The translations under genes and the position numbers were made by a program. The notes below the pieces were generated by a model. That model searched no databases. It had not been told where the DNA came from and saw nothing but the letters and a program-made list of their open reading frames with translations. This document shows, one piece after another, positions 30,414 to 38,506 of a stretch of DNA of 64,000 nt. The first letter of the stretch is position 1. The number at the start of each line of letters is the position of its first letter. Source of the stretch: Lepidodermella squamata (Eukaryota > Animalia > Gastrotricha); the NCBI GenBank assembly GCA_047495785.1, contig JBLDXI010000024.1, forward strand, positions 5,394,001-5,458,000, given 5' to 3'.

Positions 30414-32645
30414 TTGAAGCCAACATGATGTGATAAAACATATTATTTTTAATACTCTAATTTTGTGTTTGTGCGATATTATTAATTGTAAAGGCATCGG
30501 ATGCTGATAACATGGAGTCACTGATGACCGCCCGGCCATCAGTGCTCTAGTAGCAACAGCGACAACTGAAGGATGAGTCTACAAATGACATACATACATG
30601 CATGTTGTCTTGTCTTGTCCCTTGTTCGGTGAATGTCTCCGTCTAATAAGTACTTAATGCCTATAGTTTCTTAACTACGTCATGGATCGCGCTTCAACAA
30701 GGCTTGAAAAAAAACAAGTACTTATATAGCAGCAGCAGCAGCATGCAGAATTGCTTTTTTCCGCTATCCTAAACCCCTGATATAGAAGACACCTGGCTGG
30801 CTGGCTGATTGATCTGATACTTATGGTGATGGGGTTATGCATAGACTACCTACATATGATATAGACGATTGTGAAATCTATAACAAAAACAGACCACGTT
30901 TTACAAATTGACACAGCTATAACATTCCTTTCTTCTCACTTGCGTTGTTGTTCGTTTTACCTAAACGTTGTTGTTGTTGTTGTTGTTGCCGTTGTTGATG
31001 ATTTGATATTTGTTCGTATTAGCAGAATTTTGAGCTCAATCGCAGCTGATTTTGTGTGCAATATCATCATCACGTTCAGTTTTATGTTGTTGTTGTCAAT
31101 TGCAAGAGCAGCACATTTATATTATTTATTTTTTTCAAGTTCAACACCCTAAAACACCTCTAGTCAGCTCTATAACTAGAACCCTGTTGTTACTAGTTTG
31201 TTCTCCGATGGCCAATTATTATTATTATGCTACTATAAGTCGAGATGATAGTAAGAAGTGAAATGAGCAACAGCAGCAGCAGCAACTAATCCTCGAAATC
31301 GCACTAAATTGGTACAGAGTTCAGAGGATTGGCTAGTCTTGGCTTAATCTATGAATCAAAGCGAAGTGCAACAACAACAACCCGAGACAGCGATGAGCAG
31401 CTACGATTCTCTTACATTATTGACAGTGTGCAGCATCAAAATGTCATGGCTTCTTCCTTTCTTCTCCGTTCGTTGTAAAAAAACTTGAACTACTTACTAC
31501 ACCTTATTCGACCTCGATATTTTTTTTTGCCGTGTTTTTGTACCAACTACCAACCATTCATTCATTGGTAGCAAAGTTGAAGATGGTGGTGGTGGTGGTG
31601 ATTCCTTTCATTGATTCATGATTGTTTTCATTATATCGTTATATAATATTATAATATTATAGTTGATGTAGTCCCGGTTCAATGAAACTAAATGATAATA
31701 CATATAACATGAAACAGCTACTAATTGATTGGTCTCAAGCTTTAAACATAAGAAGAGTGTTAATTCGGTCAAGTTGTGATTACAAATGTGTGCATATTAT
31801 CCAAGCTTCGAAAGCAGCCCGCCCCCATCTCCATGTATAGTATGTTGTGCAAAAAATGGCGGCGGCTTCTACTTGTTGTGATTGATCTCTGCAACTGCGT
31901 CTTCGGCTGCGTGAATATCAAGTATAGTCATCTCTTGATCTATCTGACTGACTGACCTGAATGATCTCGGCGTTATGTTGAATTGATTCTCGATTTTGGC
32001 GTCTTGTCATGACAGCGTGATTCTCGTTCTTCCACCGTCTGCCTTGCCAGCCATTGTTAATCTCAAACTTGTTGCTTTTTGTCGAAAACTGGTCTCATTA
32101 TTGCAATGCTTATAAAAATATCCGTGTTGTGCTTATATGGTGGTGGTGGTGCAAAATCTAGTTTTTAACTGTTGTTTATTCCTGCGCTGCAATCTTTTCG
32201 GTGTCTCCTCTACACGTGATTTTCGAACGGTCTCAAACAAATAACTAAAGTAATACATAATATCCTCTAGTGGGGTTGATGAACCAAGTAAACGCATCAT
32301 TCATCTCAGGAGTCTCTTCTCTCGCATAAATAGCTCTATTCGAACCAAAATTGACGTTGCATGTACGTACGTTCATCATCGACGTGGCGCTTGTTTGCTT
32401 GCGTTTTTTGTCTCCAGCTGGCGCCAAAATTAGTGTTCATTTTCGGCTATAACACTTATCTATTATGGATCGAATCGAAAATTTATTAATAAAGAATCGT
32501 ATATCAGCTCAATCGAACGCGTGTTTTGTTATAGGTACATTGGATTCACTTGGGGTTGGGCTTACTACATCAGAGCTGTTTAAAAACATATTATGTTGTT
32601 GTGCATCTTATAGATAGATACCTATATCGGTTTTATAAGGCACAA

Positions 32646-35600
32646 ATGATGGCGGATGACTTTGACGGAGCCATCGAACTGCTGACGGCTTCGAGTAACG
32701 GCGCTGACCAGGTGGTGTTGGAATGCCTGAGAAAAGCTCGCATCGCCATGAGCAGACTGGCGTCGAATTCGACGATCGACGCGGCGAAAGCGACTCGCCT
32801 CGCCGACATTTGCCTCAACAAACTCGTCGAGGCGGAGGTGAGTGATAGCGAAAACGAGGCGGTCGCTGTCAGTTTGCTGCAGCTGCTGTGCAATGCAGTT
32901 GTCGCCGGTTTCTTGTCACCGCCGTTTGAACGCGTTCTCCAACACGCGCCTCGCCTCGCAGCTACATGCTCGTCGACGACAAAGCGCGGTTCAATGGTAT
33001 CGGCGTTGTTTTTCCAGTGCTCACTGCGCAATGACTGCTTCATCGACGAGTTGCTACTCAGACTGCAGATGAACGATTATTCGCTCCTGGGGTCTTATGT
33101 GGAGAATCTCGCGAACATGTGGCTGCAGGCAGAGCGGCACGACTACCTGGAGTGGAACGTGTTCTTGCTCGAGGCCGCGTTCGCCTCGCCGCACTTCGGC
33201 CTGCTCGTCGCCGGCCGCATGGCGCCGAGCAGGCGGCGGCTCGTGCTCGAGGCGCTGGTCGAGGCGCCGCAAGCCGCAACGACGCAGACCCACCGCTACC
33301 TGCGCTGCGTCGCCGACGAACTGAACCGAACGTGGCAATCGATATCGAGCCGATATTCAATCGATATGGATTTGCGTGATGACGACGACGAGTTGCGGTG
33401 TTTGAGTCTGCTAGCCGAACTCGTGGCAGACGCGCCGCCAGATCTCCGCCACTCGATCGACACGCCCCAGTTGTTCGCCACTTGCCTCGATCTGCTGCAA
33501 TTCGTGCGTTCGATACCCGACACGAAAAACGATTCCAACCAGCAGCAGCCGTGTGGTGCGTTGAATTTGAAGAGCAGGGTGATTCAGCTGGTGGGCGTGC
33601 TGCTGCGAGACTCGCCCGCCAACAAAGCGGCACTGCTGCAGCGAGACGACGCGCTGCTCGGCCTCGTCGACGTCATGAGCCGCCTCGACCTCGCCAGCCC
33701 CTTTGCCTCGCAGTGGTGCATCGTGGCGATTCGCAACGCCGTTGACAACAGCCCCGAAGTCGCGCTCGCCCTCTACGAACTGCTCACCGGTTCCGATCTG
33801 CTGGGCCGGCTAGGCGTCTCCCTACAACCTGCTGCTGCTACGGACGATAGCAAGAATGCTCAAGAATGCACTGAGTGTGTTCAAGTCGAAGCTGGTGAGT
33901 CGACTAATGAGATCTACTACTACTCGAAGGCTGATTTCGTATGTTCGCCCGATGATTCGCCGCCGCCGTCGATGACTCGCTTCAGTGAGCACTTGCGGGC
34001 GGCGTGGCAGCGCGCGTGCGGCACGCCCGGGCTGCTGCGGTTCCGGTGCCGGGCCGAGTCGACGCCGGCGCGCCGCATCGGCCGCTACTACGCGCTGCTG
34101 AACGAGCAGCGGGCGACGAACCGGCGAGCGGCGCCGCACTTCGACTCGGTGACGCAGCCGCCGGACGAGCACGCGTTCAACTTTTCGAAATGCCGCCGGC
34201 AAGAAGTGCTCTTCGCCATGCACTGCCGCGAGGACGTTGAGGCGGCTGGTGGTGGTGCCGAGCTGGAGTTGGAGGCAACTGGTCGGCGCGTGTTCAGCCG
34301 GCGGCAGCAACGCGTCTCGCCGCTGCACGAGCGCCACGTCGTCATGGTGAACGTGTCGCCGATCGGCGATCCGTCATGCTTGATCGTACCCGACAGGTGA
34401 GACAGCAAATAGTCAAAAGTAGTCGGAGTAGTTAGTTTTGCGTTCGGTCGAAAGGTCAAAAGGTGCCAGTTAGGCGAACGAACCATTTGTTGCTATAATG
34501 GCATCGTGTACACATTTCAGAGTGCAACAAAAAGTGGTTCACTATTATAGCCAAGAGTGCAGTTTTTTATTAAAGTTATTTTTCTGTTTTGCAATATTTA
34601 CTCGTTTTCGTTTTTCGTCTTCGATCGATTTTCACAAGATCGATCGAATGGTGGTAAAAAATTTGCGTAAAAAGCAGCGCAATATGGGATGACATTGAAA
34701 AAAAAGTGTTTAATTTTTGCAATATAGACTGGCTGTGCTGCCGCAGTTGATGACGGTGGAGGCGGCGCGGCTGGCGATCCACTTTGCGCTGGCGTGCGGC
34801 GACCGGCACATGCGCGTCGGCTTCAACTCGCTGTGCGCCTTCGCCTCGGTCAACCACCTGCACCTGCACGCGTGGTCGAGCCGCAACGGTGCGCCCGGCT
34901 ACGAGCGCGACGGGCTCTACGTCGAGTCGACGCCATGCCACCGCCTGCTCGTTGATCAGCAATCGCCATCGGTGTTGTTCGAAGTGCGCGCGCCCGACGA
35001 CTCGCCGCTGCCCGGGTTCGCGCTGTCGTTGCGCGAGTCGGCACGAGGCGACCCGGACCGCCTCGCGCAGCTCTTGTACCTGGTGTGCGATGCGCTGGTG
35101 GTGCGCGACACGCCGCACAACGCGCTCGTGACGTGGGGCCGGCCCTTCGAACAGCAAGCAGAAGCAACTCGAACTGATGATGACGATGCCGAGCAGACTG
35201 AGTGGACTGTTCGCGTGTTCGTGTGGCCGAAGCGCAAAATCGAACGTAAGTTGATGCTTGCTTTGCTCGTCCTACTCTTCTTACGCGTGTAGTATTTGGT
35301 GTTGTGTGCTCATGCGTGACTGTGTGTATGATTTGATTTGATTTGATGATGATGCTCGTTCGAATAACACACACACAGGCTGGCAACAGCGCCGGCCACT
35401 CGCCGCTGCTTCGATGGAGTCGGGCGGCTACGTCATTGTCAAATCGCCAGCTGCCTTCAACGCCATCTTCCAATCAAAGTCAAATCACGTTGATGACGAT
35501 GATGATGATGATGTATCATTGCTGGGCTCACAGATCGCCATCGACGCGGAAATGTTCGCGCAGACGGCGGCTGCGTTGCCACCACCAACCAGTCGTCGAA

Positions 35601-36129
35601 CAGCCGATGGATGTGGTGGACACGGTGGTGGTGCTACAATAGCAGCGAGTGACGAGTGGCGGCGGCTGTGCCACGCTGTAGCCAGCCACGTCGTTTCAGC
35701 AACAGCATGATGATAACACCGCTATAAACACCGCTCAGTATTTTATTCTGCGTCGTTTTTCTCGTTTGTGTGTGTGTGATTGAGTTATTTGGCATGGTTC
35801 TATTGGTGATTTGTCTGAATTGTTTATGCTCTCCTCCTATACATGTACAGGTGGTGAGAAGGATGCGGCGGTGTGCGCAGCCGTGGGCGAACTCGCCGGC
35901 TACCTCATCGTCAAGGACGAGTCGCTGTTCTACGACGACGACGACCAAGATGGTGGTCAAATGTCAGCCGAGTGGTGGCATCGCCAAGTCACCCAACAGG
36001 TAAGCGTCAGTCACCCTACTTATTAGTTTGTTAGTTTTTTGTAATCAATTCAAACAGGCTGCGGTGGCGCCACCGCACGAGTACGCCGCCATTCGCCAAG
36101 CTGTTGTCGACGCTGTTTCATCATCGTAG
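32646..36129 (+). CDS. ATXN10-GDPGP1: Ataxin-10-like ARM region fused in frame to GDP-D-glucose phosphorylase (GDPGP1/VTC2-like HIT enzyme); exons 32646-34396, 34728-35245, then 35379-35710 or 35851-35999 + 36058-36129
   Basis: Ataxin-10 C-terminal motif LKSRVIQLVGVL...SPFASQWCIVAIRN (about 33561-33780). It is followed without a stop by GDPGP1 motifs RFSEHLRAAW, LNEQRATNRR, FNFSK, VNVSPI, LPQ, RVGFNSLCAFASVNHLHLH and ELAGYLIVK. Confidence 0.8.
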
Positions 36130-36927
36130 CAGCCGAGATCCGATCCAATTCACTCTGATGCTGCTGAAATGGCCTTTTACTCGTGTATTCTGTGATTACT
36201 TATAATATACCTTCTGCTCTACTGCTTATAGTTCTTGTTGCTGATTTCTATGCTGATGATACATATACATTCATAGCTTATATTTTGTGCTCTTTGTTTT
36301 TTCTTTCTCTCGCTGCTGACGATGATGATGATGCCGGTTTGTGGACAAAATGATAATAAAATTGAAACAAGTCACAAACAAGTCTCAGTTGTTTATCACT
36401 TTTCCATCGAAGACAAGTTTTTTCCTTTCTCCAAAACATAACTAACTTGCCAATTTTCACGTGCCGTTGGTGCAATATAATTGGTCATAATTGTCGCATT
36501 TTTAGTTTTAGACCACAGGCCACTCGAACAAACAAACAAACTAATGAAGAAACAACGCTGCTGCGGCCAACAGGTGCTGAATTCTTTATAGGTACAACAG
36601 CCCCAATTTACTGTGCGGTCTTCGAAGGCGCCATTGAATCGATATTACATATATGCTACTATCGGAAGTATAAAACTACTCTATCGAAGTGGGCCTATTC
36701 CGTCTTTTAATAAAAATTAATACTTGGCCCACCGACATTGGTTCGATGGATAGTAAACAATGGCACAGGTCGGTAATAAACGTGTCGTAGTCGCGTAGGT
36801 GAGACGCTAAGCCGGCAGTCATCCACCATCCATCCATTCATCGTCGTCATCATCATCATCATCATCCTGATAATGACGACGACGACGATGACAGCTGAAA
36901 ACTGCCGCGCTGCTATAAAGTAGCTGC

Positions 36928-37320: not shown

Positions 37321-38506
37321 ATGCCGAACTCGAAAGCGAATGCAAACGCGAGCAGTAAAGACACCGGCAAAGCGGCCGGCGGTGGCGGCAAAAGCGGCAC
37401 CCAGGAGTCGATGGGCGCCGTGGCCGCCGGCGACCGGCCTGAAACCATCGTCGAGGAACAGGAGAACGAGGCCATGAGCATTCAGGTAAAATTGTTCATT
37501 AATTGTTCAACTATAACCTGAGACACTTTTATCTAATCAGGAGACGACAGTGTCGCGGTTGTCGCGCACGCAGCGCGGGGCCCGCGACAAGACCGGCATG
37601 GGCGAGAAGACGTCGCAGGCGCTCGTGTCGCAGCAGCGCCTCGAGAACACGTACAAGCTGATGCCGGACATGCCGTTCCGCACTGGCCGCGTCAACGAAA
37701 AGGTTACTTCGCCAATTCACTCTACAGCAATCTACTGCTTCTTCTCATTAATCAAACTTGCCGAAATCGCCATTTTTTATTAGGCACCCAGAATTGTTAT
37801 GAACAATCTAAGAAAATCATTTTGGGAATTTTGAAAGCGGGAAAATTTGTAGCAAATTTCTTCAGTTTCATGTGTTCATATTCGTTGGGCGGAACCCGGA
37901 TTCGTTGTTTTTTCACCGATTTATAACCGTCAAGTTGTATTAATAACATAACAGCAATATTTCACTTGAAGTTCTCATAGTATTCGAACTATCGGGATTT
38001 AAGCCGGGAAAATACCTGAAAACGCTGAATACTTGTAGAAATTTAAAATAATCTCAAATTACCATGGGCAGGAGTTTCAGAAATTGGAAAAAAAAATCTA
38101 CTGTACTCCAGCTTTCTTGTTGCTGAGTCATCAACTGCGATGAGAAAAAAATGAAAACACAAGTGTTCTTAAATCAGCGTTTTGTTTTTTTCATTATGAT
38201 TTATTACAGGTTCACCAAGTGGTGTCGGCGCGCATGGCCGATTTCACGTACTCGCCTGAGCGGGCGGCGGCGCTGACGTGCGAACTGGCGGCGGCGTGCA
38301 AGGCGGCGGTGAAGCAGCTGCGCATGGCGCGGCACAAGCTCGTCGTGCTGGTGACGCTGCTGCCGGCCGGCGCCGACTGCCGCCCCTCGCTCATCTACTC
38401 GTCGCGCTGCCTGTGGAACACCGACACCGACTCGTCGACGAGCGTCACCGTCACCGCCCGCGCCGCCACCGTCGTCGTCCTCGTCTTCGGCCTCTACTAC
38501 GACTGA
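37321..38506 (+). CDS. Tctex-1 family dynein light chain (TCTEX1D/DYNLT5-like), 3 exons
   Basis: LENTYKLMP..F; YSPERAAALTCELA; RHKLVVLVTL; SRCLWNTDTDS; VFGLYYD-stop. Confidence 0.88.

Follow-up and report, generated by a model that had tools for sequence, protein, structure and literature searches.

Ataxin-10 is a conserved protein with roles in cytokinesis and a link to disease (spinocerebellar ataxia type 10), whose molecular function is poorly defined; its signature domain, Atx10homo_assoc (PF09759), is common to yeast Ctr86. The enzyme GDP-D-glucose phosphorylase 1 (GDPGP1) removes GDP-glucose and has received little study. We describe here a gene of the gastrotrich Lepidodermella squamata in which an ataxin-10-like module and GDPGP1 are encoded in one continuous reading frame. 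The gene lies in a stretch of 64,000 nucleotides (nt), hereafter the window (GenBank assembly GCA_047495785.1, contig JBLDXI010000024.1, positions 5,394,001 to 5,458,000 of the forward strand), and all coordinates given for it count from the first letter of that stretch.

Ataxin-10 has been reported to associate with O-GlcNAc transferase (OGT) and with Plk1/Aurora B (PMC4322367 and others), and it is discussed in the literature together with starvation-induced chaperone-mediated autophagy. According to Adler et al. 2011 (as cited in PMC7041677), GDPGP1 uses phosphate to split GDP-glucose into GDP and glucose-1-phosphate, and GDP-glucose rises when the enzyme is lost; GDPGP1 also affects neuronal glycogen and stress survival (PMC7041677). 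Among the papers searched, none names GDPGP1 together with ataxin-10. The only one to contain both 'GDP-D-glucose phosphorylase' and ATXN10, a mouse neuroanatomy study, makes no link between them in its title and abstract.

The gene in the window differs from these systems at the boundary of the two modules. Unlike ataxin-10, its N-terminal module runs on into an enzyme instead of ending at a stop codon; and unlike human GDPGP1, C. elegans MCP-1/C10F3.4 and the plant GDP-L-galactose phosphorylases VTC2/VTC5, its enzyme follows ∼420 residues of solenoid and linker in one predicted chain, without a start codon of its own. This is a new domain architecture made from two known families, which appears to be unrecorded and confined to one lineage. 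Since a distant relative has the same join, we take the fusion gene to be genuine and conserved, and it is quite probable that it is translated as one two-module protein of ∼92–95 kDa.

Reading frame and identity of the two modules

The plus-strand frame is open from 32550 to 34400 in the list of open reading frames (ORFs), its first ATG is at 32646, and the start of the protein predicted from there aligns with the start of the relative's protein. The splice structure was read from the sequence and checked by translation; exons in the window are GC-rich (0.55–0.70) and lie amid AT-rich introns and spacers (0.35–0.40). An earlier note on this DNA had described a single uninterrupted frame leading from an ataxin-10-like part into GDPGP1, with the HIT motif HLHLH in the next exon, and it was right on both counts: the motif is reached by the in-frame splice 34396>34728, and the motifs it quoted all lie where it had placed them, namely LKSRVIQLVG (residues 308–317, nt 33567–33596), SPFASQWCIVAIRN (residues 351–364, nt 33696–33737) and YYYSKADFV (residues 424–432, nt 33915–33941). 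Up to the second intron the gene has the following features.

32646–34396, plus strand: exon 1, with the start codon, the ataxin-10-like module, the linker and the N-terminal part of GDPGP1; 583 codons and 2 nt, donor GTGAGA at 34397, phase 2
32646–33800, plus strand: ataxin-10-like ARM/HEAT solenoid module, residues 1–385
33570–33758, plus strand: match to Pfam Atx10homo_assoc (PF09759), residues 309–371, including PFASQWCIVAIRN
33801–33908, plus strand: linker of 36 residues (386–421), poorly conserved
33895–33900, plus strand: donor-like GTGAGT, use of the site without support
33909–34396, plus strand: GDPGP1 N-terminal region, residues 422–583, opening with the YYSxxDFV motif
33972–33974, plus strand: Met443, the first ATG in frame on the GDPGP1 side; the homology begins 21 residues before it
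34397–34727, plus strand: intron 1 (GTGAGA...ATATAG), 331 nt, GC ∼0.37, absent in the relative
34728–35245, plus strand: exon 2, the catalytic half of GDPGP1 with GFNSLCAFASVNHLHLH; the acceptor at 34727 keeps the frame
34855–34869, plus strand: histidine triad HLHLH in exon 2, read from the sequence
35246–35378, plus strand: intron 2 (GTAAGT...CACAG), phase 1, at a position common to the relative

The C-terminal half is predicted to be a complete GDPGP1, because its alignment covers stand-alone enzymes from residue 2–5 to ∼330. In these alignments, which span query residues 422 to ∼790, the spliced protein matched proteins named GDP-D-glucose phosphorylase 1 by their sources (molluscs, Lepidoptera, Priapulus, vertebrates) with E-values of 1e–31 to 1e–35 (phmmer, Z = 1e6), and like them it carries the homology through to the C-terminal ELxGH/Y..VK. 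The window protein keeps every column that shows no variation among 24 stand-alone GDPGP1 proteins, including HxHxH, GFNSL, NxSP, HN and Arg; the three histidine columns of NHLHLH (34852–34869) are among those invariant in all 24. Conservation in 22 or more of the 24 proteins is seen at 56 columns, and the window protein keeps 42 of these. Language-model features of the GDPGP1 N-terminal region point to the GalT and GDPGP1_N families. The Pfam search gave no match to GDPGP1_N or GDPGP1_C (PF26217, PF26216), models that were apparently missing from it, the clear members P0006 and P0012 also being blank.

As for the fold, the enzyme module of the relative, 47% identical to that of the window, was modelled by AlphaFold2 with a predicted local distance difference test (pLDDT) score of 82, and its Foldseek matches were Apa2, At5g18200 and GalT, the best of them with probability 1.0 and E-values of 1e–5 to 1e–3. 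This model places the enzyme in the GalT branch of the HIT fold, as expected of GDPGP1/VTC2 proteins. The best structural matches are yeast Ap4A phosphorylase Apa2 (PDB 4i5v) and the Arabidopsis ADP-glucose phosphorylase At5g18200 (PDB 1z84, 2h39), although identity to them is only 11–18%, no PDB match was found at the sequence level and they act on other substrates.

The N-terminal module we read as a member of the ataxin-10 family whose first 270 residues have strongly diverged, an assignment made because of its C-terminal signature domain. Residues 309–371 of the window protein match Atx10homo_assoc with 17.9 bits (E 0.003), the Pfam gathering score being 28.9 bits, while the orthologous stretch of the relative (P0001) scores 40.1 bits (E 3.6e–10), above the cut-off. 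In a phmmer search of 1.84 billion proteins the window protein also matched P0016 (E 8.6e–4), itself an Atx10-domain protein with 74 bits to PF09759, and in hhalign a profile of window and relative aligned with P0016 at a probability of 96% (E 2.7e–9), over the C-terminal 64 columns only. The domain sits where it does in ataxin-10 (human ATXN10): a helical ARM-like solenoid of ∼385 residues ends in the signature domain and carries the PF.SQWCI.AIRN motif. The AlphaFold2 model of residues 1–385 is an all-helical solenoid of 21 helices (pLDDT 67) that resembles ARM/HEAT proteins generally, with template modelling (TM) scores of 0.5–0.6.

The first 270 residues of the module gave no match to other ataxin-10 proteins in the phmmer search or in hhalign against P0016. 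They show only a generic ARM/HEAT fold, and in the HMMER search their sole sequence match was P0002, from the relative. By language model, the closest families to the N-terminal half and to the Atx10 region were generic ARM families and not ataxin-10; PDB sequence searches with exon 1, both profiles and P0001 gave no match, and P0016 gave only a chance-level one; word-index protein searches with exon 1 and with the profile of window and relative returned nothing except the relative. The name ataxin-10 given in the earlier note thus stands for the signature domain, by way of the relative and the profile. It does not extend on the same footing to the window's own Pfam score, which is below the cut-off, or to the generic first 270 residues.

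The same join in a distant relative

The fused orthologue in a relative that the earlier note had proposed to look for was found, with the same collinear join in one ORF. In the HMMER search the best match to the window protein was P0001, a metagenome protein of 464 amino acids (aa) that aligns with query residues 275–583, crossing the junction, at 41% identity (E 1e–53). The N-terminal ARM part (query residues 21–267) matched P0002 (269 aa, E 5e–13). The two proteins are encoded on a single strand of a 20-kb metagenome contig, P0002 directly upstream and 16 nt away as called, and a 58-nt intron (GTAAGT...CTCTAG, L003 8782–8839) joins P0002 to P0001. P0001 itself is one ORF of 464 codons in which the Atx10 domain, the linker, the GDPGP1 N-terminal part and the HIT half follow each other uninterrupted. 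The locus is present in two metagenome samples, with 10 differences in 2392 nt.

The spliced proteins of window and relative are collinear from start to end and ∼34% identical, and tblastn of the relative's protein on the window gave a single high-scoring segment pair of 515 residues over the junction (E 3e–82). Identity is distributed along the protein as follows.

Residues 1–274, ARM N-terminal part: 27%
Residues 275–385, Atx10 domain region: 43%
Residues 386–421, linker: 22%
Residues 422–757, enzyme: 47%

The two species differ in where their introns lie. The relative's DNA is AT-rich, with introns of 58 and 100 nt; the intron inside the enzyme (after ...VPD) is present only in the window and the 58-nt intron in the ataxin-10-like part only in the relative, and a phase-1 intron after ...KRKIE is the only one in common. 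The relative's neighbours, WNK kinase and Ras/Roc genes, are absent from the window, and no gene order is shared.

Outside these two loci no fusion was seen in the proteins and loci compared. Among 86 related proteins PF09759 and PF26217 occur together only in P0001, whose precomputed annotation lists PF26217 (GDPGP1_N), and the other 85 GDPGP1 homologues are all stand-alone proteins of ∼260–480 aa. At the 36 GDPGP1-like metagenome loci collected in a scan with the HIT exon, tblastn revealed an Atx10-like region in none, and a scan of JGI metagenomes with junction-side motifs found no relative. Upstream of the closest stand-alone match, P0003, the contig carries a gene resembling Cu/Zn superoxide dismutase (SOD), not ataxin-10. 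The 64-kb window holds no second copy of either module.

Independent DNA data exist for the window locus itself. The DNA run X2, from another study, covers the whole of 32300–36400 with ∼2% divergence and many small non-coding indels; given this divergence, it represents a second strain, haplotype or sibling species. A single X2 contig spans 33543–34416, across the junction. Two X2 indels fall within the linker or shortly after it, at 33828 and 33958, and each is 3 bases long, while most non-coding indels (upstream of the ATG, in introns and after the stops) have a length of 1, 2 or 8 bases and a single one, in the 3′ untranslated region (UTR), has 3. Of the X2 substitutions listed in exon 1, 22 of 32 are at third codon positions.

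The linker and competing explanations

In the window the linker has no stop codon in the coding frame, against 1 and 4 in the two remaining frames; the counts are 0, 3 and 4 in the relative, whose linker is AT-rich (GC 0.28), so that stops would be frequent. Shuffled linkers of the window stayed open in a fraction of 0.19 of the trials (0.06 when intron composition was used), and those of the relative in 0.057, fractions that exclude the further one-in-three requirement that both domains share a frame; the openness of the linker exceeds chance expectation. The earlier note had argued that GDPGP1 homology, with YYYSKADFV, precedes the first GDPGP1-side Met. This is borne out, since the homology sets in at residue 422 and the first in-frame Met is residue 443. 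Neither species has a start codon at the onset of the homology, nor a usable internal one.

The strongest competitor is that of two functionally separate head-to-tail genes, in an operon-like arrangement with trans-splicing, where the enzyme is made from its own mRNA by means of an internal promoter or spliced-leader (SL) acceptor and starts at Met443; the continuous frame would then be of little consequence. We consider it unlikely. The GC content at third codon positions (GC3) of the linker, which is like that of non-coding DNA, would suit a spacer between genes, as would its fast evolution, with three of the five listed substitutions at first or second codon positions and the two 3-base indels mentioned above; but it is only the coding frame that is kept open in both species, even at the relative's low GC. 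AG dinucleotides at 33928–33929 and 33983–33984 could serve as acceptors. The start codon, however, would have to be Met443, which lies 21 residues inside the GDPGP1 homology and behind two out-of-frame ATGs (33941, 33952); a Met is missing from the corresponding place in the relative. On the other side of the boundary, neither species has a stop codon between the upstream module and the enzyme, and AATAAA is not found in the linker.

A variant of the fusion would be a transcript that spans both modules and also uses the GTGAGT at 33895 as an alternative donor, which would yield an ataxin-10-only isoform or, with an acceptor at 33984, an in-frame deletion of 30 residues. The earlier note had raised this donor as a caveat. 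The hexamer is indeed there and fits the donor consensus, but the caution is weakened by the same hexamer at 32838, within the conserved ARM part, and by the relative's linker, in which GT[AG]AG is not found. The stretch 33895–33984, with CTTCAG at its end, has a length divisible by three (90 nt); its removal, on the other hand, would delete the YYSxxDFV motif common to stand-alone GDPGP1 proteins. It was rejected as a candidate intron for the loss of this conserved motif, and a 35-nt candidate (33895–33929) was rejected for shifting the frame. We regard this variant as very unlikely.

That the join is an artefact of assembly or reading, whether a chimeric contig or a decaying pseudogene, found no support and is improbable in the extreme: a chimeric assembly is ruled out by the single X2 contig over the junction, the relative has the join in two separate metagenome assemblies, substitutions favour third codon positions, the lengths of the listed exon 1 indels are multiples of three, and the family-invariant residues are all kept.

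It should be said, however, that several observations weigh against a single active two-module protein. The GC3 of codons 33816–33905 is 0.37, against 0.57–1.0 in the rest of exon 1, and 0.37 is the value of non-coding DNA in this genome; with its 22% identity to the relative, the linker is also the least conserved region of the protein. The low GC3 fits recruitment from a former intergenic spacer and equally fits weak constraint. The window's own Atx10homo_assoc score is under the Pfam threshold, and the fusion has been seen in only two species. The small run X1, which we take to be cDNA from its loose ends, presumably SMART cDNA primer sequences, covers only 32300–32462 and ∼35862–36372 of the locus; none of its patches lies over the junction. 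Finally, in the enzyme the conserved His of 'EYGH' is Ser in both fused proteins (SPIGDPS at 34356–34376 in the window; the His of 'SP.EYGH' is present in 22 of the 24 stand-alone GDPGP1 proteins), and 13 other well-conserved columns differ, among them column 142, at which stand-alone members have Gln, and column 121, at which they have Tyr. With these changes the activity or specificity of the fused enzymes could differ from that of their stand-alone counterparts, and the lineage-specific Ser, a residue of the first half-domain, might alter how metal or substrate is bound.

Alternative 3′ ends, putative neighbouring genes and possible meaning of the fusion

A further difference from stand-alone GDPGP1/VTC2 proteins is that two alternative C-terminal exons follow intron 2.

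35379–35710, plus strand: alternative terminal exon 3a, stop at 35708–35710; isoform of 866 aa, 95.4 kDa
35851–35999, plus strand: alternative exon 3b, same phase as 3a; with exon 4b gives an isoform of 829 aa, 91.9 kDa
36058–36372, plus strand: exon 4b, coding to the stop at 36127–36129, then 3′ UTR; AATAAA at 36355–36360

The two 3′ ends (35379–35710 and 35851–36129) are entered in the same splice phase, and the C-terminal A..E..GY..VK element of GDPGP1 is present in both in different forms, in exon 3b the canonical VGELAGYLIVK and in exon 3a a divergent duplicate with its own stop. Both ends are conserved in the relative (L002 2214–2400 and 2504–2700); they have the look of mutually exclusive terminal exons that were conserved as a pair. 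The 3b isoform outscores 3a against stand-alone GDPGP1 proteins, for example 126.6 versus 115.5 bits with P0040. That the 3b/4b end is transcribed is shown by X1: its cDNA-like contigs have depth at exon 3b, one begins exactly at 36058, the boundary of exon 4b, and another reaches 36372, 12 nt past AATAAA. By exchanging the last structural element of the enzyme, the two ends may allow isoform-specific tuning of its C-terminus.

On both sides of the gene there are signs of putative neighbours. Upstream, at 32245–32462 on the minus strand, a cDNA-like X1 contig ends at 32462, where it is joined to what is presumably SMART primer sequence, and an ORF on this strand opens at 32427 (MAPAGDKKRK...) and continues into a donor-like GTACGT. 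Here probably lies the 5′ end of a neighbour that is transcribed divergently; only ∼180 nt would then separate it from the fusion ATG, which suggests a shared bidirectional promoter. Downstream, a further GC-rich, putatively coding exon on the plus strand (37321–37487, MPNSKANANASSK...) starts ∼950 nt past the poly(A) signal of the fusion gene and has a donor-like end, GTAAAA.

Taken as one chain, the protein is most likely, by analogy to characterised GDPGP1 proteins, an active phosphorylase tethered to a docking platform of the ataxin-10 type. A predicted ARM solenoid of the ataxin-10 type (∼385 residues) would be tied by the flexible 36-residue linker to a complete GDP-D-glucose phosphorylase of the GDPGP1/VTC2 family, within the GalT branch of the HIT superfamily. 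This C-terminal module would use phosphate to cleave GDP-D-glucose or a related GDP-hexose into GDP and hexose-1-phosphate, presumably through a nucleotidyl-histidine intermediate, while the role of the solenoid would be that of a platform for protein binding, by which the enzyme is positioned or regulated. The gene probably originated from two adjacent genes through loss of the upstream stop and downstream start codons, by which former non-coding DNA would have become the linker.

The wider reading is that of a Rosetta stone, in which ataxin-10 and GDPGP1 cooperate also where they are separate, and the ataxin-10 scaffold recruits or regulates GDP-glucose clearance or the supply of glucose-1-phosphate. 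We hold it to be doubtful. The fusion is seen in one lineage only, and lineage-specific fusions of neighbouring genes are common, often without functional message. If the reading were true, the link could tie into the reported association of ataxin-10 with O-GlcNAc transferase and into responses to glucose starvation, and ataxin-10 would gain a concrete biochemical partner. Kept as it is in at least two divergent species, the fusion offers a cheap and testable hint that ataxin-10 and GDPGP1 may cooperate.

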